Positions 4,471 to 47,803 of a stretch of DNA of 64,000 nt are shown piece by piece. Location: the NCBI RefSeq assembly GCF_000315625.1, contig NW_005434650.1:338005-402004 (forward strand), written 5' to 3'. A program made the translations under genes and the position numbers. The notes below the pieces were generated by a model that was not told where the DNA came from, made no database searches, and was given only the letters and a program-made list of their open reading frames with translations. Positions within the stretch are counted from its first letter, which is position 1. Each line of letters starts with the position of its first letter. The stretch is from Guillardia theta CCMP2712. Lineage: Eukaryota > Protista > Cryptophyta.

Positions 4471-6184
4471 TCAGCATTGAAAAAAGATCATCACTGCTAC
4501 TGTCACGTTGTCTTTGGATCCCCGCTCCAACGCCTGCTCGTTGATCATGACCCGCCTCCTCCTGCATGCTGCCTACCGTAGACGCGATCTCTCGTGCAGC
4601 TGCACGAGCCGCTCGCTCCCCTGCCGCGACCTTGTCGCCCATCACATCCTGCAACGGACGTCATACGACTAGCCCGATGAGGACACCATGAACCTCAGCC
4701 GGCAGGGCATGACGACGCGCAAGGTCGACCGCCTCCTGGTTGTTGAGAACATCCCAGACCTGGTCGAGTTCACGTTAGCCCTTACGAACGATGTCGATGC
4801 GTCATAGCAACCCCGTCGCATCCGATGATGAGGAACTCGTCATCAGCTTCGCTCACGTGCTCATCAGTCCTGCATCGGCTCGCTCGCCCTCCCTCTCCAT
4901 ACCGGTCAGCTTCGTGCTCGTCACGTCTGGAGTCCCTTCAACGTAGGAGACGGGGACCTGAGCTGAGATCAGCGGGGGGGGACAAGGGGGGAAGAGAGAA
5001 GTATTGATGACCTTCCACGGGACATCGCCGAGAGCTCTTGATACCGCAAGCCTGAAACGAAGCATCATGCCAGTCGTAAGATGAGGAGCTGAGAGATATT
5101 CACCCGCGAAATGCTGCGATGCCGCTGCCGCCTATTACCCTCCAGCATCCTCGCCATTCCACCTACGAGTGTTCAATTTTCGCTGGCGCTCGAGGCTGGA
5201 GGAACATACTCTGCCATCCAAGCTCTCGATGCGAGCTTTCTCTGACGGAAGGTCGGGCTTGTGATCCTCTGAGAGCGCCTGACATACTCAGATGAGCCCC
5301 AGCAGGCCACGGGACCTTCACTGGACCTGTGCGAAGCCATTGCGGCAAAGAACTGCTCGACTATCCCCCAGGTTGGCGACGTGAAGAACGTCTCCCAGCA
5401 GGAGGGCAACATTGGCCGTCGAACCTGCAACAAGAAGAATCAGCAGCCATAGGAGCGACAGGCTCACATGCCTCCGCTCAGACTTCCTTCCATCGTTAAC
5501 GACATGATCTCTGAATCTAGTTTCTCGAACGCGTTTATCAAAGACTTCTTCACTGCCTGTTCTTAGCGTGAGCAGCTCTAAACTCGCAGTCACTTGATGC
5601 ACCTGGGTGTCAGGAGTGAGAGGGCTGCGATACCATGCTTCCAGCGCAAGCAGCGCCGGCATCCTTCCAGCTGCGTAGTCAGAGATCTGCGATCCGCTAT
5701 GCCCATCAAAAACAGCACAGAAAGCTCTCGCTCCTGAGAGCTTCTCTTCGATCGACTTGGGATAGAAGTCAGGCACGAGGACATGCTTGTCCTCCATCTG
5801 CGGTCTCAACCCCTGTTCCTCTGCAGCTCCCATACACACCAACTTGCATCTGAACGGCAGGTTCGTGGCAGGCGCGGGTGCTGACGCGCATGCCTGCTGG
5901 ACCTTGTTGGCGGCGATGTGGTCGAGCTCGCCGAGGAGATCTTCAATCTCGTCGCCTACGTCACTTTGATCCCAGCTCGCCTCCCTCTTGGGAGGTGCAG
6001 GCGCCTTCAACAGGACGGAAGGGACGGCAGGAGCGGGAGGAGCGGAGGGAGCGGAGGGAGCGGAGGGAGCGGGAGGAGCCTGATGTTTCGGGGTGTTGTT
6101 GATTGTCTTCCATGGGCGGATGGGAGAGCTTTCGATGTCATCTAGCTCTGACAAGAGTTTGTCGTATTCGTTTTCTTCTTCCAT
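4471..6184 (-). CDS. PP2C/PPM-family Ser/Thr phosphatase, multi-exon
   Basis: QGLRPQMEDKH, AVFDGHSG, GSTANV, HVANLGDSRAVLC, LAVSRALGD, C-terminal ALERGSKDNVTV; Pro/Ala-rich N-terminal linker encoded by 9-bp repeats at ~6030-6080. Confidence 0.92.
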
Positions 6185-6438: not shown

Positions 6439-6447
6439 GCCCAGCTC
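6439..6447 (+). repeat. Left target-site duplication GCCCAGCTC
   Basis: Identical to 10420-10428 and abuts the left TIR. Confidence 0.9.
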
Positions 6448-6462
6448 CACGGGGGTGGAACT
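6448..6462 (+). repeat. Left terminal inverted repeat (15 bp)
   Basis: CACGGGGGTGGAACT; imperfect match to the right end continues about 8 bp inward. Confidence 0.93.
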
Positions 6463-6651
6463 CCTCTTTTACCGGTATTAGGACGGGTACTTTTCCAATC
6501 CTTTTTACAGGGGTGGGGTAGTAGAATTTGTTGGGAATCGCAATGGCGATCCCGCGACAAACTGTTTCGAGGATGAATATCTCAAGAATGAAAATCTGTA
6601 CAATGCAAAACAAACATTTTGTATTTAGAGATACATACAAATTGTCATTCT

Positions 6652-9600
6652 CTATACTTGTTCGCTTTGTACACGTCTTAATTTTTGACATTTTGTCCTT
6701 TCTATCTCTTCTTCCGTAGACTTACAACCAGACAAAGTTCGTAAACCCTGAAATCTAGGCATTTGTCCTGTGAATCCTCCTCGTGTATCCAAAGATTGAG
6801 TATGTATACGTTTCCGAGATCGAGGTTGGGACCTGCACTCATTCTCTTTGTCCCGTGTTCCTTCCTCTGCGTTGAAAAGCGTCTTCTCCCCGCGTGGTCT
6901 GCTAAGAATGATTCGCTTTTTTGAGTGGTCATACACAAAAGGCAGATTGGGATCGAATTTTTTTGAGAGCTCAGTGCATGCTTTGTTGAATTTCCTCAAG
7001 AAATCTTTCTTGTTCAAATGACCTATCAAAGACCAGAGGTTTTCAACGCTGTCTGTGCAGAGCGTCCGTGCATTGAAGTCATACTCCTTTTCACCCAACA
7101 CACCTTTGTTGTTGCTCAAATAACTCTGTATCTGTAGATGTGTGTCCATGGCTACAATCAGTCCTTCGAAGGTTACAGATGACAACCCCCTCATGTGCCT
7201 CTTGCCCACCCTCATCCAATCCACATCTCTTAGAAGCCAGGTTCGAGCTCTAAGAATGAGATTTCTTCTTTCAGACTTGGTGAGGCCTCTCTCGTCGAAA
7301 GCTCTGTGAAGGCCGTTCATTGCTTCTGCCATTCTTGCTGTTTCAATGTGTCCCTCTGCATTCAGAAGCGATATGGCCTTGCTGCTGAACATTTTTAACA
7401 TGATATCCACTGATTGAGGGTCCGTGCACCCATCGACTTCCAGCTGCGTTAGCCATGACGAATTCTTCTTGGAAATATCAGTGTACGCAGCATGCCATGT
7501 TTTAGCCTCTTGCTGTGCAGTCGGGTTTCTCCCCGAGCCAACCGTGTGCCTGACATTCTTCAGTAAATGATTGATACATGGCGCAAAGAAAAGTAGCTTC
7601 TTCGTGGTTGGAGAGATAACAGGGTTTGACAGGTACTCGTTGAATTGAAACCTAATCTTGTTTGGATCAAATTCTTCCAATCCATCTGTGATCAATCGTT
7701 CGAGCTCCCAAGGCGTGAATTTGGCTGTTTCATTCTCTGCAACCCCTTGTTGTATAATGCTATCATATCCATACCGTCGGCAGAAGATGTGGATTCTGCT
7801 GTACATCTCGTTCAAACAGGCCTTAGTTCTGGTGGCAGGAGAACACTGCAATTTCTTTTCTCTCTGGACCTGCCATATCAATTGGTTCCTCCTCAAACTC
7901 AAGACGAATTTCTCTATTTGGGCAAACTCTGCAGTGTTCATGTGCATTATTCCAGATCGAGTTCGAATTGTCACTTGGGACAAGTCAGGTCCATCATATT
8001 GGTTCATATTCAGCAAATTGCATTCTCTCTCTACTTCCTGTGCAGTAATGGCTGGTTCAAAGTCGAATACGCATGAAATGTATGATGCGATCTCTGAGCA
8101 TATCTGTGATATGCTCAGCTTCTGGGCCTCTTGTTTGATAGCCTTCACCTCCGTTATGAATGTGCTTGGATTGTTCACGTAGTAATTCCTGTATATGCAA
8201 GAAAACTCGCCGTCAAAAGACCAGACATTGAAAATAATTCCACGCTCGTGAGCCTCCTTTGTAACGGCTTCCAATATTCGAAGACCTTCAGAGGCACTTA
8301 AACTTTTGGTTGAAAAACCAATGTACATGGGGACAGGGGGTGTGCTCGCACATCCATCTTGTGCAACCACACTGATGGCATCTTCAGCCAGTTCAGCAAC
8401 TGTATGCTTGTAAAATTTCTCATTGTACTTGTACAACTCGTTTTGAAGTTCTGATTCGTTGACAGGCAGATCGCCATTCGCCATTCCCTCCAGTTTTCCT
8501 ATCAATCGAGGAATTTCTACATCCATCTGTTCACAGCCTTCAATTACTGTCTTGAGGTAACGTTGATGTGGTGTGAACCTGACATCCTCTGGAGATTCGC
8601 CTCCGGTTCTATGCTTGGCAACAAATGCATTTCGAACCTTCTTGTATGCTTGCTCCATATCACTCTTCCTCTGATGCACACTCTGTTGATCGGATCTCAA
8701 CATGCCAACCAGCTGTTCGCTGATATAGTGTTCTGTCTTTCCTGTCAAACAAAACTTTTCCTTGCGATCTTCAAGCAGGTCAAGTCGCTGAGCCAAGTCA
8801 GGTTCATGACTTGTTATACCCCCCAGATCTGCTTCACATTCCTCAAACACAGAACAAAATCCTGCATTTATCATTGTTTTGTCGATCGCACAACAGTTCA
8901 CTCCAGTCTGACAATGCTCAGGATTCATTCGACGGAATTCATCCATCATAAATGTGCACACTCTGGACCTATCATTGCCATGCAGTTTCATGAGATGCCT
9001 ATCTCGTTTCTGAAGAGTGGATGTGGATGGCAGAGGTAAGTTGTGTAACATCTGGTCCGCATCAAAAGTTCCAGTATTTTTGTTCCCCGGCCCTGTGAGC
9101 AAGCGATATAGACCTGAGGTGCCGACATTCCAAATTGATGCAGCGAAACTCATGACTTGCTCAGAGTATCGCATGCCTCTAGTGTCCTTTGTTCGAAAGC
9201 CTTGTCGTATCCAGTCGCTCACTATGAATGGCATGATGGGGTGTTTGCTCTTCATGCCATCTCCTTCCTGACTGGCGAACATTACGACATCTGAAACTAT
9301 GTCGGGAAGCTCAGCAGAACGGAGGTTATCCATCGCCCTTTCAACATGGCAGATGGTGAGAAAGCACTTGGCAGTAGGACTTTCGTCATTGGATTCTTCA
9401 AGAGACTCATGCTCTTCAAGAATGCTTCGGATGAAATCACGTCTATCCTCCAATGGCATTGACTTGAAGTTCTCGCACATTGTATGTGCGAGGAGAGCGA
9501 ATGCTGTTTTGATATTGCTGTTCTGGTCTTGGCCAATATGTTCAGGCCTTACATACCTGCATGTGGCATGTCAGTGCTCTGGTGCATTCCAGCTCGCTGG

Positions 9601-10194
9601 TTACCTTGAGTGATAATCGTGTATTTGCTTTTGTAGCTCGTCAACAGTGTCATAGTGCGAAGTGGCCCAATGTCTGATTTTCTTACACAATGCCTTTTGC
9701 TTTTGCCGATGATTCTTTACTTGAATTCGAAGCTTTTGCGCGTCTATGTGCAGCTGGAATTGATCATGATGCATTTTGGCATCTGCTCCTTGTTGAAACG
9801 AGGTGAAGTAATGAAGGAAACAATTTTTGAAGCCCTCTGCATTCTGTCCAAAGAGGTCACCTAGAAGCGTCAACTTTGCTCGCACATGAGAAGTGTTGAT
9901 GGTGTGCTGGCTCAGCTTGAGATAACTAGCCGCTACTTGTAGCAAGCTATCATCCGCGTCGCTTATCTTCAACGTTGCGTGCCCGATGTTTTGCAGAAAA
10001 TGTAACAATTTCAGCACCAATGCGTCAGTGAACACTGCATAATCCTGTACAGTTTTCAAGTCGATGTCTTTGAAAGCCCGTCGACAACGTGAACAAGCTT
10101 TGATGCAGTGTTGAGGGATCGTCCGAATACTGTTCGTACTGTATCTCGTCTTACAAATAGGGCATTCCTCTCTGTCTGCTGTCGTCTTGCTCAT
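6652..10194 (-). CDS. P-element/THAP9-like DDE transposase, 2 exons (10194-9605, 9556-6652), ~1,164 aa
   Basis: A 48-bp intron at 9604-9557 (GTAACC...CTGAC...GCAG) joins ORFs 9601..10314 and 6652..9480 in frame. P-like motifs: RYSEQVMSFA...LYRLL...LPLPSTSTLQ; AIDKT (D1); SFDGE (D2); CINHLLKNVR; QSVDIMLKMFS; TDSVENLWS (E). An alternative ATG exists at 10314. Confidence 0.85.
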
Positions 10195-10404
10195 GGCAAG
10201 GATGCAGTGCAGATTGCCCGCCAAAATTCGGATTTGAATTTCTCCCCATGGCGCGTCATAGATCTTGCATCGTTGCCTTATACCCCCTGCATGACCACCG
10301 CCCTCGATGTGCATCGCGGTCGATGGGAGGGGTATTTAACTGAAAATTAGTACCAGGTATGGGCTAGAGGCAGTGGTTGGCCCGCGGATGAGATCGAATA
10401 TAGT

Positions 10405-10419
10405 AGTTCCACCCCCGTG
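10405..10419 (-). repeat. Right terminal inverted repeat (15 bp)
   Basis: AGTTCCACCCCCGTG. Confidence 0.93.
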
Positions 10420-10428
10420 GCCCAGCTC
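10420..10428 (+). repeat. Right target-site duplication GCCCAGCTC
   Basis: Identical to 6439-6447. Confidence 0.9.
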
Positions 10429-42661: not shown

Positions 42662-45600
42662 ATGAGCTTTCTTCCAAACTTGTTTACAAGAGCAAACTCA
42701 TTGGGCCAAGCGAGCCAGTCAAAGAGTCGGCCTTCCGTCCGGAAGGCATGGGATGAAATCGATGACTCCTCCGACGATGAAGATGAAATTCGCGTCGGAC
42801 AACAACACACAATCGATGTGCTTAAAAAGGATAGGATTACTGATTCAAGACGACGAAAAAATATATCGTCAGCGTATGGTATGTCTCTTCACTGTCTCGT
42901 GCCTTTTTGATTATTCTCTTCTGAGTATGCTTCAGGTTCTGGTTCACCTTTTCAGGATTTTGAAACACCAATGTCTTCACTTCAAAGCAAAATCGTGCAG
43001 CAACCTCTTCAATCAGATAAATGGCAAGCAGAATCCAATTTTTTTGATGAAGACTACAGCAAAATACTCGTAACATTGCGGAAGTATGAAAGAGATCTGG
43101 AATGTCAAGAGATAGGATCCTGTAGAGATTTTCTTCAGAAAACTGATCGATACTTAGACGGTTCTTCGAAAGCTGACAAAGCTTTAATGAAGGCACGCGT
43201 TTTGGTTTGCAGCAGTAGGCTTCTTTTGGACAAAAATCTCGAAAGTGCAATCCAGAAGGGGAATGAAGCAATATACCAGATCCTCAATTTATCAAATATG
43301 GAATTTGATTCAGATTTATGTCATTCATTGGAATTGTTAATGGGTGGATTGCAGAACCATATCAATCATTCACAGGACCCAGATGAAAGGCTTTCGATTC
43401 TGAGCAATTTCGTGAAAGGTTATCTGGCTTTGCGGAATAAAAATGTCTTCGAGGCCTTGGATTACATCCAAAGAGCGAAAGATCTTTCTCGAATTGTAAC
43501 GAATGGAAAAGTCATGGAAACCCAGTTGACAAACTTTGCGATTTCGCTGAGGAACAATTACAAATCAGTCAATTCAAGGTCACTGGTGCCAGAACATCGT
43601 TTGAGGAAAAACGTGTCTGAGCATCCTGATCTCACATCTATCAATATTGGAACAAACAAAAATGATTCAAAAGTCAAAAGGAATACATTCGACCAAAAGT
43701 TTGATATCTCCGATGATTCTGATGAAGATGTCACAGTCCAGCAGAACTCTTCGCTGATCACACGAACGAGTTCTTTGATTTTAGATGGTTCCAAGTCAGC
43801 CAAAAAGGTGAAAGAAAAGGCGTTACCGTCTCTTTTAGAGAATAACCATCAGAAAGCAGTCAAAAGATCATACATGAATCCAACAAATACGGTGATATCT
43901 AGAACTTCTAGTGAATCGCACGAGGGTTCATTCCGAACTGGGTCGCCTTTTTCACTCCAATTTGGGTTGGGTTCTCGAAAGACAAATATTTTCCGACATA
44001 TTGATGGATCCGTAAAGGAATCAAGCGCGACACTCATTCAGAACTGTTTTCGAATGTGGAGATCTCGCAAAAAAGTGACTCAATTACGGCATTTTCACCA
44101 AGCTCGGTATTTGACATCATCGGATTTGACATTAAGATTCAATTCAACGATTGTTCATAGGCATTCAAACATGCAAGATATACAACAAAAGGTCTATGCC
44201 TCTACTGTCATCATAACGAAATTGAAACGATCTCTCCTGCAGAGGTCTTGGATTGACAAGTATAGCTCACGTCATCTTTTGCTTTCAATGTTGCAGAGAA
44301 ATAATCCTCGAATGCGGTATTTGCAATTGTTAGCAGTTGCAAAACTTGAAGGCTCAATCAAAGCTCATTTGACATATCGTCGCTATCCAATTCAAGCATT
44401 TCTGATGCTCAGACAGGTGACAAGTCGGAAAATTCTGCGTTGTAAATACATTACAACGATATCGCAACATAGAGTCGTTCAAAGCTTTGCCAGAAGGAGC
44501 ATTGAAAGCCGAAGATTTGCACAGATGATTGTAGGATTTACAAAGATATATTTTTCAGTATTTGCGAAGGGACTTCGGAAACAGTTTCTGGAGAACTATG
44601 AAATAATCGTGGTACAGGCTCGGTGCAGACAACGACTACAAGAACTTGAATGGAAGCATTTTCTGCAGCAAGCCAAATTAAATCATATTCAAACTCTACA
44701 AGCTAGACTGAGAACCACTTCTCTGCAAACTCAATACCAGAGGCAAAGGAAAAGCTCGATCTTAAAGGCGACAGGCCGGAGGGCTCTAGCGCGAGGACGG
44801 TACGCCCGGGAGGTAACGAGGCAGCTGGTCACGGCTTGGCTGAGGAGGACAGAGGCCAGGAAGAGGTATGCAGAGACCAAGAGTCAGTGCAGGAGGCTAC
44901 AGGCGTACATGAGGAGGGCGTTGTACAGGAGGGCCCAAGCAGAGAGGAGGTCAGCAGCAGAGAGGCTGCAGGCGTACATCAGGCAGCAGGCGAGGAGGTC
45001 ACGAGGCACGAAGCAGCTGGCAGCCGCAAGGGCCGAGCGGGCATGTCAAGTGCTGCAAGCTGCGGGCCGGCGGCGAAGGGTCCGCGAGAACTACCAACGG
45101 GCAGTAGGGAGCATGCTTCTGCAAGCCACGAGCCGGCGGGCTCTAGCGCGAGGACGGTACGCCCGGGAGGTAACGAGGCAGCTGGTAACGGCTTGGCTGA
45201 GGAGGACAGAGGCCAGGAAGAGGTATGCAGAGACCAAGAGTCAGTGCAGGAGGCTACAGGCGTACATGAGGAGGGCGTTGTACAGGAGGGCCCAAGCAGA
45301 GAGGAGGTCAGCAGCAGAGAGGCTGCAGGCGTACATCAGGCAGCAGGCGAGGAGGTCACGAGGCACGAAGCAGCTGGCAGCCGCAAGGGCCGAGCGGGCA
45401 TGTCAAGTGCTGCAAGCTGCGGGCCGGCGGCGAAGGGTCCGCGAGAACTACCAACGGGCAGTAGGGAGCATGCTTCTGCAAGCCACGAGCCGGCGGGCTC
45501 TAGCGCGAGGACGGTACGCCCGGGAGGTAACGAGGCAGCTGGTAACGGCTTGGCTGAGGAGGACAGAGGCCAGGAAGAGGTATGCAGAGACCAAGAGTCA

Positions 45601-47803
45601 GTGCAGGAGGCTACAGGCGTACATGAGGAGGGCGTTGTACAGGAGGGCCCAAGCAGAGAGGAGGTCAGCAGCAGAGAGGCTGCAGGCGTACATCAGGCAG
45701 CAGGCGAGGAGGTCACGAGGCACGAAGCAGCTGGCAGCCGCAAGGGCCGAGCGGGCATGTCAAGTGCTGCAAGCTGCGGGCCGGCGGCGAAGGGTCCGCG
45801 AGAACTACCAACGGGCAGTAGGGAGCATGCTTCTGCAAGCCACGAGCCGGCGGGCTCTAGCGCGAGGACGGTACGCCCGGGAGGTAACGAGGCAGCTGAT
45901 CACGGCTTGGCTGAGGAGGACAGAGGCCAGGAAGAGGTATGCAGAGACCAAGAGTCAGTGCAGGAGGCTACAGGCGTACATGAGGAGGGCGTTGTACAGG
46001 AGGGCCCAAGCAGAGAGGAGGTCAGCAGCAGAGAGGCTGCAGGCGTACATCAGGCAGCAGGCGAGGAGGTCACGAGGCACGAAGCAGCTGGCAGCCGCAA
46101 GGGCCGAGCGGGCATGTCAAGTGCTGCAAGCTGCGGGCCGGCGGCGAAGGGTCCGCGAGAACTACCAACGGGCAGTAGGGAGCATGCTTCTGCAAGCCAC
46201 GAGCCGGCGGGCTCTAGCGCGAGGACGGTACGCCCGGGAGGTAACGAGGCAGCTGGTAACGGCTTGGCTGAGGAGGACAGAGGCCAGGAAGAGGTATGCA
46301 GAGACCAAGAGTCAGTGCAGGAGGCTACAGGCGTACATGAGGAGGGCGTTGTACAGGAGGGCCCAAGCAGAGAGGAGGTCAGCAGCAGAGAGGCTGCAGG
46401 CGTACATCAGGCAGCAGGCGAGGAGGTCACGAGGCACGAAGCAGCTGGCAGCCGCAAGGGCCGAGCGGGCATGTCAAGTGCTGCAAGCTGCGGGCCGGCG
46501 GCGAAGGGTCCGCGAGAACTACCAACGGGCAGTAGGGAGCATGCTTCTGCAAGCCACGAGCCGGCGGGCTCTAGCGCGAGGACGGTACGCCCGGGAGGTA
46601 ACGAGGCAGCTGATCACGGCTTGGCTGAGGAGGACAGAGGCCAGGAAGAGGTATGCAGAGACCAAGAGTCAGTGCAGGAGGCTACAGGCGTACATGAGGA
46701 GGGCGTTGTACAGGAGGGCCCAAGCAGAGAGGAGGTCAGCAGCAGAGGAGGCTGCCGGCATACATCCGGCCGGAGCGAGGAGGTCACGAGGCACGAAGTC
46801 ACCTGGCAGCCGCCCGGACAACCGGGCATGTCAAGTGCTGCAAGCTGGGGGCCGGCCGTTAACGGTTCACGATAACTACCTATCGTGCACGTTGCTAATG
46901 CTTCTGCCTCTTCCCAGCCGGCGGGCTCTAGCGCGGGACATGTGCTGCGGGAGGTAACGAGGCAGCTGATCACGGGTTTCCTGAGGAGGACAGAGGCCAG
47001 GAAGAGGTATGCAGAGACCAAGAGTCAGTGCAGGAGGCTACAGGCGTACATGAGGAGGGCGTTGTACAGGAGGGCCCAAGCAGAGAGGAGGTCAGCAGCA
47101 GAGAGGCTGCAGGCGTACATCAGGCAGCAGGCGAGGAGGTCACGAGGCACGAAGCAGCTGGCAGCCGCAAGGGCCGAGCGGGCATGTCAAGTACTTCAGA
47201 GTTGTGTTAGAAGGGTCAGTGTTTCTTCCTTGTTCATGCAGTATTATGGTTGCATTGTTCTTCAATCATCGGTTCGTCGTTTGATTGTTGCGAACAATGT
47301 GGGCTGGGTACGAAAAGTTGCTGCTAAAAAGCATCACGACATGGTTGGACTGGAGTCAAAGCTATCCAAGGGAAATTGGGAAGTGGATCGAAGTTCACTT
47401 GGAAACGCCTTCCGGTATGCCAAGTATGGGAGGTACAGAGAGCTGGAGAAGGCAATACAAGATTCTGAAGTGTCTGTCGATGACCAATATGGACCCAAGA
47501 ACAACACTCTGCTCTGTGTGGCTGCAAGCCACGGACATCTGGTTCGTATTTGTATATTGATTTCTATTTGAGATTCTTCTGACTTTGAAGCTGCAGAGAA
47601 TTGTGAAACTTCTTTTGAGGAACAAGGCTGACATCAATTTCCAAAACAGTGAAGGGAACTCGCCGATGCATCTAGCAAACATCTTTAACTACAAAGAACT
47701 TGTCAATTATTTGATCTCCAAGGGAGCCAACAAGGAGCTCAAGAACAAGCGAGGTCATTCTCCGTTGGAAGAATCCGTCGATGGACCTGATGAAGCTTCT
47801 TGA
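42662..47803 (+). CDS. Large protein with an IQ-like repeat array and C-terminal ankyrin repeats; apparent -1 frameshift at ~46940
   Basis: First intron ~42879-42935; IQNCFRMW and repeated LQAxxRR motifs; ankyrin NTLLCVAASHGH and GNSPMHLA. Confidence 0.75.
44780..47192 (+). repeat. 357-bp (119-aa) coding tandem array, ~6.75 near-identical copies
   Basis: CTCTAGCGCG anchor at 44784, 45141, 45498, 45855, 46212, 46569 and 46926. Confidence 0.97.

Follow-up and report, generated by a model that had tools for sequence, protein, structure and literature searches.

Canonical P elements create target-site duplications (TSDs) of 7-8 bp, a spacing of 8 bp is seen in the solved P strand-transfer complex, and Yuan and Wessler in 2011 reportedly gave CANRG as the terminal consensus of P. 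In the literature consulted, P-type transposons have been described mainly from animals, with only sporadic fungal records (PMC5751038). A TSD of 9 bp (CTAGTAGGT) has been reported for the P element of Drosophila buzzatii, with the duplications of its miniature inverted-repeat transposable element BuT5 measuring either 8 or 9 bp (9 bp in 13 of 17 copies; PMC3698922). Kolobok elements, which are deemed close to P, hAT and MuDR, are characterised by TTAA TSDs, 5'-RR...YY-3' ends and a C/DxxH signature (PMC9587614). Here we describe an element found in a 64,000-nt stretch of the genome of the cryptophyte alga Guillardia theta CCMP2712 (the window, in which all coordinates are given as positions): spanning 6448-10419 (3,972 bp), it is very probably an autonomous, recently transposed class II cut-and-paste transposon, the two-exon gene of which encodes a DDE transposase of the P-element/THAP9 fold with an insertion domain bearing the C/DxxH signature. 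Rather than a new kind of element, it constitutes a divergent new family and arguably a deep new branch of P-fold transposons, its newness being judged from the literature: no paper describing this Guillardia family was found in the literature searched.

The element is bounded by perfect 15-bp terminal inverted repeats (TIRs) of the form CAC...GTG, giving the termini CACGG...CCGTG (i.e. CA...TG), with a perfect direct repeat on either side (Table 1). Both features had been proposed in a sequence-only reading of the window, and both are borne out by direct reading and by the other copies in the genome. Exact matches to the 15-mer terminus number 27 in the genome, with a further 24 containing one mismatch, compared with 8 occurrences of a reversed control pattern, and the presence of four full-length genomic copies indicates that the match of TIRs and TSDs is not due to chance. 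All four of these copies exhibit perfect 9-bp TSDs (CAGCACGAT, CAGGACCCC, GCCCAGCTC and CAGCAGACC), as do five complete copies of sister subfamilies that possess the same termini (CCGACCCCC, CGAATCCAA, GCACTGGCC, CCTTGGCAT and GGCAGGCGG): an exact duplication of 9 bp is hence found in 9/9 complete copies. Homology between the copies breaks off precisely at the CAC/GTG tips, with the flanks being different for each copy. Of the two parses that had been considered from the sequence, a 9-bp TSD with CA...TG ends or a 7-bp TSD with 16-bp CC...GG ends, the latter is ruled out because the base directly outside the CAC tip varies from copy to copy, whilst the perfect duplications in all nine complete copies show the former to be correct. 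Comparison of both ends with the genome and alignment of the flanks, the check that had been suggested, thus fixed the termini and the 9-bp length, with no 8-bp or asymmetric-end pattern present in the complete copies. Deviations were observed in older deleted copies, with the TSD of C5 matching at 8/9 positions and that of C69 explained by either 8 bp or a 1-bp loss. The nine TSDs have a G+C content of 70%, compared with ~46% window-wide, and no sequence consensus is evident among them. No repeated subterminal motif was found in the element except for the TIR-like CAGGGGTGG.

In a search of the 3,972-bp element against its own 87-Mb, 669-contig assembly, four full-length copies were identified (C42, C36, C24, which is the copy in the window, and C80), along with many partial or deleted copies and a distant group of ~70% identity. 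Three of the full-length copies (C42, C36 and C24) are 100% identical over all 3,972 bp, whilst C80 differs at 6 positions. The open reading frame (ORF) of C80 stays open and its five exonic differences are all non-synonymous: there is thus no sign of purifying selection on this copy, which fits neutral decay following insertion. Pairing of the 15-mer ends revealed two sister subfamilies, the first with two complete copies (C3, 4,036 bp; C7, 2.3 kb) and the second with three (C20, 3.3 kb; C83, 2.3 kb; C172, 3.3 kb); sister-subfamily proteins are 36-55% identical, and both the termini and the 9-bp TSDs are shared. The deleted derivatives fuse distant parts of the element, their junctions consisting of a 4-nt overlap or of 2-16 nt of filler. 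Interrupted gap repair after excision yields deletion junctions of this type in the P and Ac/Ds systems. The insertion at the locus itself is present in both DNA data sets, with contigs bridging 6447/6448 as well as 10419/10420, and in one DNA run the depth over the centre of the element reaches ~11x that of the flanks, exceeding the ~6-8 assembled copies of that part. We also observed a 424-bp miniature copy with both termini present (L033; G000:C11:1091652-1092075). Its right flank begins by repeating the 8 nt with which the terminus ends (CCCCCGTG), and a clean 9-bp TSD is absent after them; these additional 8 nt may be the scar of an earlier event.

A single gene is encoded on the minus strand, in which two long ORFs serve as exons and join in frame to a coding sequence of 3,495 nt for a protein of 1,164 amino acids (aa). 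The two sister subfamilies (L031 and L034) carry an intron of different sequence (GTAAG...CAG) at the equivalent position, and their first exons, 34-37% identical in protein, have the same end point (...IHDY-x-x-K/R): the conserved end of exon 1 and the conserved position of the intron provide comparative support for the gene model, and as a gene model the uninterrupted spliced transposase predicted from the sequence holds. RNA-read cover of the element is sparse in the one raw RNA run and includes a pile-up at 6498-6646, which would correspond to the gene's 3' end under the usual library strand convention. Paralogues are present in the MMETSP transcriptome. As a separate observation, a contig of 2,590 nt from run X6 leads from the left tip of the element (6448) into a 627-nt flank ending CTCGGTG, and neither a 30-mer nor a 17-mer of this flank is found in the reference assembly; the contig could stem from an unassembled or new insertion site or else be a chimeric transcript.

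In order to place the protein, we compared its predicted structure with those of solved transposases. For the 965-aa exon-2 piece, AlphaFold gave a model with a mean predicted local distance difference test score (pLDDT) of 70, the core (~200-510 and 640-870) lying mostly above 85. Foldseek returned 6pe2 and 6p5a at the top with a probability of 1.00. Using VIA-align, the model (196-868) superimposed on the P-element transposase chain 6pe2_A (204-569), i.e. on the RNase H core and insertion domain, with a Z score of 28.0 and a root-mean-square deviation of 3.2 Å over 316 residues, and the next match, Transib, reached a Z score of 12.6. Of all solved transposases, P alone thus stands out by fold (28.0 versus at most 12.6); the fold matches included no solved Kolobok structure. 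Searches of ESM-Atlas, by features and by shape, led to THAP9/P-transposase clusters both times.

Sequence searches gave a narrower picture, with word-indexed protein searches returning only Guillardia proteins or a mollusc YqaJ clade. In an exhaustive HMMER scan covering 1.8 billion representatives, 72 hits were obtained, those from outside Guillardia aligning only to ~636-880 of the exon-2 piece, with identities of 23-33%; the nearest of these homologues are metagenomic proteins (26-33% identity, last third only) that have the CxxH variant in common. Among 59 aligned homologues, a YqaJ domain is present in 12, helix-hairpin-helix motifs in 6 and PF21787 (TNP-like RNase H N-terminal domain) in 4. 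PF21787 produced no match in the whole genome, but its failure to match in control genomes as well makes this negative uninformative. In addition, phmmer of the protein against PDB sequences gave noise only and a search for related loci with alignment A5 afforded no confirmed relative. The conserved columns follow the order D...D...C/DxxH...E, for which D422, D645, C857-x-x-H860 and E1035 are the candidates in the full-length protein (Table 1), with H860 conserved in 55/57 aligned homologues. When the family profile A1 was run against the PDB, the best hit was the Drosophila P-element transposase (6p5a; E 5e-5; runner-up 0.03): in this alignment CxxH falls on D339-T-P-H342 (DTPH), the E motif on V-E531-H-F-F and PQSV...FS (PQSVxxxxxxFS) on K-Q399-K-V401...F408-S409 (KQKVxxxxxxFS).

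At the N-terminus, exon 1 displays the conserved pattern CxxC-x17-19-CxxC, which is distinct from the C2CH of THAP. The model of this region is of low confidence (pLDDT 58) and contains a long helix (137-180), whilst residues 45-135 gave weak, uniformly winged-helix-type matches with Z scores up to 7.6, i.e. within the noise of the tool. We tentatively read the N-terminus as combining a zinc motif with a coiled coil and perhaps a helix-turn-helix, which would represent a functional parallel to the THAP/leucine-zipper/helix-turn-helix arrangement of P.

Table 1. Features of the Guillardia theta element, given as positions in the window.
Feature	Position	Strand	Basis
Left TSD copy, GCCCAGCTC	6439..6447	.	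Read directly; 9-bp TSDs in 9/9 complete copies of the family
TIR CACGGGGGTGGAACT, end downstream of gene	6448..6462	+	Read directly and repeat search
3' untranslated/subterminal region	6463..6651	-	Greatest RNA-read depth of element at 6498-6646 (X24 depth 13, first mate on +)
Exon 2, residues 198-1164 and stop; predicted RNase H-like core with P-type insertion domain	6652..9556	-	ORF; fold match
E1035 codon, motif DSVENLW, candidate third catalytic residue	7042..7044	-	E in 49/54 aligned homologues; vEnfF on VEHFF (E531) of P transposase
C857-x-x-H860 codons, C/DxxH signature as CxxH	7567..7578	-	H in 55/57 aligned homologues; on DTPH (H342) of P transposase
D645 codon, motif WSFDGEF, candidate second catalytic residue	8212..8214	-	D in 42/43 aligned homologues; model strand with pLDDT > 90
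D422 codon, motif CAIDKT, candidate first catalytic residue	8881..8883	-	D in 13/14 aligned homologues; first core strand of model (218-226 of exon-2 piece)
Intron, 48-nt GT..AG (GTAACC...TGCAG)	9557..9604	-	Sequence; retention would introduce an in-frame stop
Exon 1, residues 1-197; zinc motif, possible helix-turn-helix, long helix	9605..10194	-	ATG at 10194
C11-x2-C14 ... C34-x2-C37 codons, putative four-cysteine zinc motif where P transposases carry THAP	10084..10164	-	Four cysteines kept in subfamilies 36% identical
5' subterminal region, presumed promoter and 5' untranslated region	10195..10404	-	Inferred from position only
TIR, AGTTCCACCCCCGTG on + strand	10405..10419	-	Exact reverse complement of CACGGGGGTGGAACT; repeat search
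Right TSD copy GCCCAGCTC	10420..10428	.	Read directly

By analogy with P, transposition would begin with recognition of the element ends by the N-terminal zinc motif and helical region, and a transposase oligomer would pair both 15-bp CAC...GTG termini. D422, D645 and E1035 would bind the metal ions needed to excise the element and to transfer its strands to the target, which would be cut with a 9-bp stagger, the repair of this stagger giving rise to the 9-bp duplication. Where repair of the emptied donor site is interrupted, internally deleted non-autonomous copies could be formed. The termini, the 9-bp duplication, the number and identity of the copies, the intact ORF, the fold and the conserved motifs are established by the analysis, whereas catalysis, the roles of individual residues, any GTP use and present-day activity we only infer. 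The predicted fold of the insertion domain, which is the GTP-binding domain in Drosophila, is retained together with the Q-x-V...FS motif. In the corresponding part of the alignment we see no guanine motif of the NKxD type, although no proper test for it was made.

The sequence-only reading had described an intact autonomous transposon of recent origin and of an atypical P-related lineage, and most of this description stands. TIRs, TSDs and a complete 1,164-aa ORF are found in four copies, and recent movement agrees with three copies being identical over their full length; relatedness to P is seen in the fold ranking, in the top Foldseek and ESM-Atlas matches and in the hit of profile A1. The epithet atypical also proved apt, given the lack of a Pfam match and of THAP, the CxxH in place of DxxH and the constant 9-bp TSD. 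The proposal that a 9-bp TSD marks a departure from P survives only in part: the length is indeed constant here, but 9 bp is known from the P lineage of D. buzzatii (PMC3698922), and TSD length alone is thus weak evidence for novelty.

Several results weigh against the assignment as a recently mobile P-fold transposon. Pfam detected no family at E <= 1 in exon 2 and noise only in exon 1, meaning that the P/THAP9 models fail to match, and a THAP domain was likewise without a hit at E <= 1. A second, trimmed profile (A3) gave no PDB hit at E <= 1, which renders the sequence link to P fragile and leaves the case leaning mostly on predicted structure. With regard to expression, no read of spliced sense RNA across 9557-9604 was seen, the intron being encountered only unspliced in run X6 (taken to be RNA by guess). 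The sole spliced RNA-like contigs, also from X6, are antisense to the transposase: they contain plus-strand GT..AG joints 8409>8466 and 9116>9163, skipping 56 nt (8410-8465) and 46 nt (9117-9164), the depth of the spliced form being no less than that of the unspliced form. These joints point to spliced antisense transcription across the element, which perhaps arises by read-through of a host gene at one of the copies and might bear on silencing. Finally, the search for an empty-site allele that the sequence-only reading had called for came back negative: there is no empty site for the locus in the assembly, no read in four runs joins the two flanks without the element, and no excision footprint of the form CACGGGGG-N(0-30)-CCCCCGTG is found in the assembly. 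The recency of transposition thus rests on the identity of the copies and not on an observed polymorphism.

Amongst the alternatives to a P-fold family, the one that fares best, although we regard it as rather doubtful, is that of a separate superfamily-level lineage that shares just the P fold and falls outside curated P (P, 1360, Galileo and THAP9). Its kin would be CxxH-type marine metagenomic proteins with helix-hairpin-helix motifs and, more distantly, mollusc YqaJ-transposase fusions. Such a lineage would account for a protein that lacks a Pfam P-family domain and has THAP replaced by a four-cysteine motif, for nearest non-Guillardia homologues that are metagenomic, 26-33% identical over the last third and share CxxH, for the presence of PF21787 in just 4/59 homologues, for the constancy of the 9-bp TSD and for the CAC...GTG ends that are also found at the loci of two remote relatives. 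However, P is matched very strongly in fold, over core and insertion domain alike, 9-bp TSDs together with CA...TG ends already occur within P (PMC3698922), and the rank of superfamily is a matter of convention. A tentative extension of the P-fold assignment, to which we give a similarly limited likelihood, would unite the Guillardia family with its marine CxxH-type relatives in a deep, hitherto undescribed P-fold branch in which THAP has been swapped for a four-cysteine zinc motif and the stagger fixed at 9 bp, and would have the element still jumping in cultured G. theta.

The remote relatives provide some observations in their own right. On the metagenome contig encoding P0024 (L051:1671-12755), the transposase relative is enclosed in a unit of 11 kb that has 59-nt, 95% inverted repeats starting with CACAGTC/CACGGTC at its boundaries and a 5-bp direct repeat (TAGCC) on its flanks, an unverified single-copy case of Transib-like ends around an enzyme of the P-fold type. 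On the contig encoding P0015 (L052:445-5725), a helix-hairpin-helix relative with the CxxH variant is enclosed by 20-nt inverted repeats starting CACCGTAG, with a 560-aa ORF upstream inside the same unit and no target duplication visible at this locus. Both units end in CAC...GTG, but with a single copy each this similarity is anecdotal; TIR searches around two further relatives, L053 and L054, revealed nothing convincing. A large, mollusc-centred family (P0018, P0086-P0101; Batillaria, Mytilus, Ruditapes and Solemya) exhibits a YqaJ-like recombinase/exonuclease domain fused to this type of transposase; PF21787 is reached by P0018 alone among these fusions, and no description of the family was found in the papers searched.

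A Mutator-like (MULE/MuDR) identity is very improbable, even though 9 bp is well established as the usual TSD length of MuDR. The C/DxxH signature is also common to MuDR (PMC3706591). Neither a MULE nor a Transposase_mut hit was obtained with Pfam, however, and the TIRs of the element are short and start with CA. In the structural comparison P is widely favoured, its Z score of 28.0 contrasting with 8.6 for IS256-type ISCth4, which we take to be the solved prokaryotic relative of MuDR. We consider a Transib/RAG-like or hAT-like element equally hard to credit: the CAC...GTG ends do resemble Transib ends and the heptamers of recombination signal sequences, and the L051 unit combines a 5-bp duplication with CACAGTC ends, but the Z scores of Transib (12.6), RAG1 (11.7) and Hermes (hAT; 10.7) all lie far below that of P, the TSD is 9 bp as opposed to 5 or 8 and Pfam detects no hAT dimerisation domain (PF05699). 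Membership of Kolobok was also considered and failed: a DDE transposase with C/DxxH signature is shared, but instead of TTAA and RR...YY we find varied 9-bp TSDs of 70% G+C and CA...TG ends, and the zinc finger that Kolobok usually has between C/DxxH and E is not seen here. That the copies derive from a domesticated gene or a segmental/assembly duplication can be dismissed, in spite of there being no demonstrated empty site or polymorphic insertion, as it is refuted by copy structure: homology stops at the TIR tips with a distinct 9-bp TSD per site, deleted derivatives and a miniature copy of ~420 bp exist, and the five coding differences of C80 are all non-synonymous.

With regard to the surroundings of the element, a tandem array of at least 7 copies of a 9-nt unit (CGGAGGGAGC-like) is found just left of the insertion (6007-6088); it is located within the start of a 288-aa minus-strand ORF (5318-6184), placing the element ~250 bp upstream of that ORF. 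Elsewhere in the window, a 2-kb block (45001-47000) stands out by a G+C content of 64-65% against a background of ~45%, combined with strong positive GC and AT skew.

As an intact and apparently just-active family in a cryptophyte, the P-fold element described here widens the host range known for P-type transposons. It also shows how far sequences may drift within the P fold and that THAP is an exchangeable domain, and it provides another and cleaner example of a 9-bp stagger to set against the 8 bp seen in the solved strand-transfer complex of P. Furthermore, with three autonomous copies that are identical and have short, well-defined ends, it is a candidate starting point for insertional mutagenesis in the model alga Guillardia theta.

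Comparison with P/THAP9 (6P5A, 6PE2) reveals a shared framework with clear points of divergence. The predicted RNase H core and insertion-domain fold are common to both, as are the order D...D...C/DxxH...E and the motifs HLLKxxRN, Q-x-V...FS and vEnfF, along with CA...TG termini, short TIRs, a single intron-bearing gene and internally deleted derivatives. In contrast, the Guillardia transposase exhibits a CxxC...CxxC motif in place of THAP and CxxH in place of DxxH, contains ~400 extra residues, among them a long helical hairpin and a stretch of disorder within the core, falls below every Pfam P-family threshold and is found in a cryptophyte alga. Of the features by which the P superfamily is defined, we find the predicted fold, the candidate DDE residues with D/CxxH (as the C variant), the CA...TG termini and a TSD that with 9 bp sits at the upper edge of the range, but not the N-terminal THAP (C2CH). 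The closest parallel for the target site is P/BuT5 of D. buzzatii, where a 9-bp TSD and short non-autonomous derivatives alongside are likewise observed: that element is a recognisable insect P element with mixed 8/9-bp TSDs, 3-bp TIRs and sub-terminal repeats, whereas the Guillardia family combines a 15-bp TIR with a TSD of 9 bp in every one of its nine complete copies.

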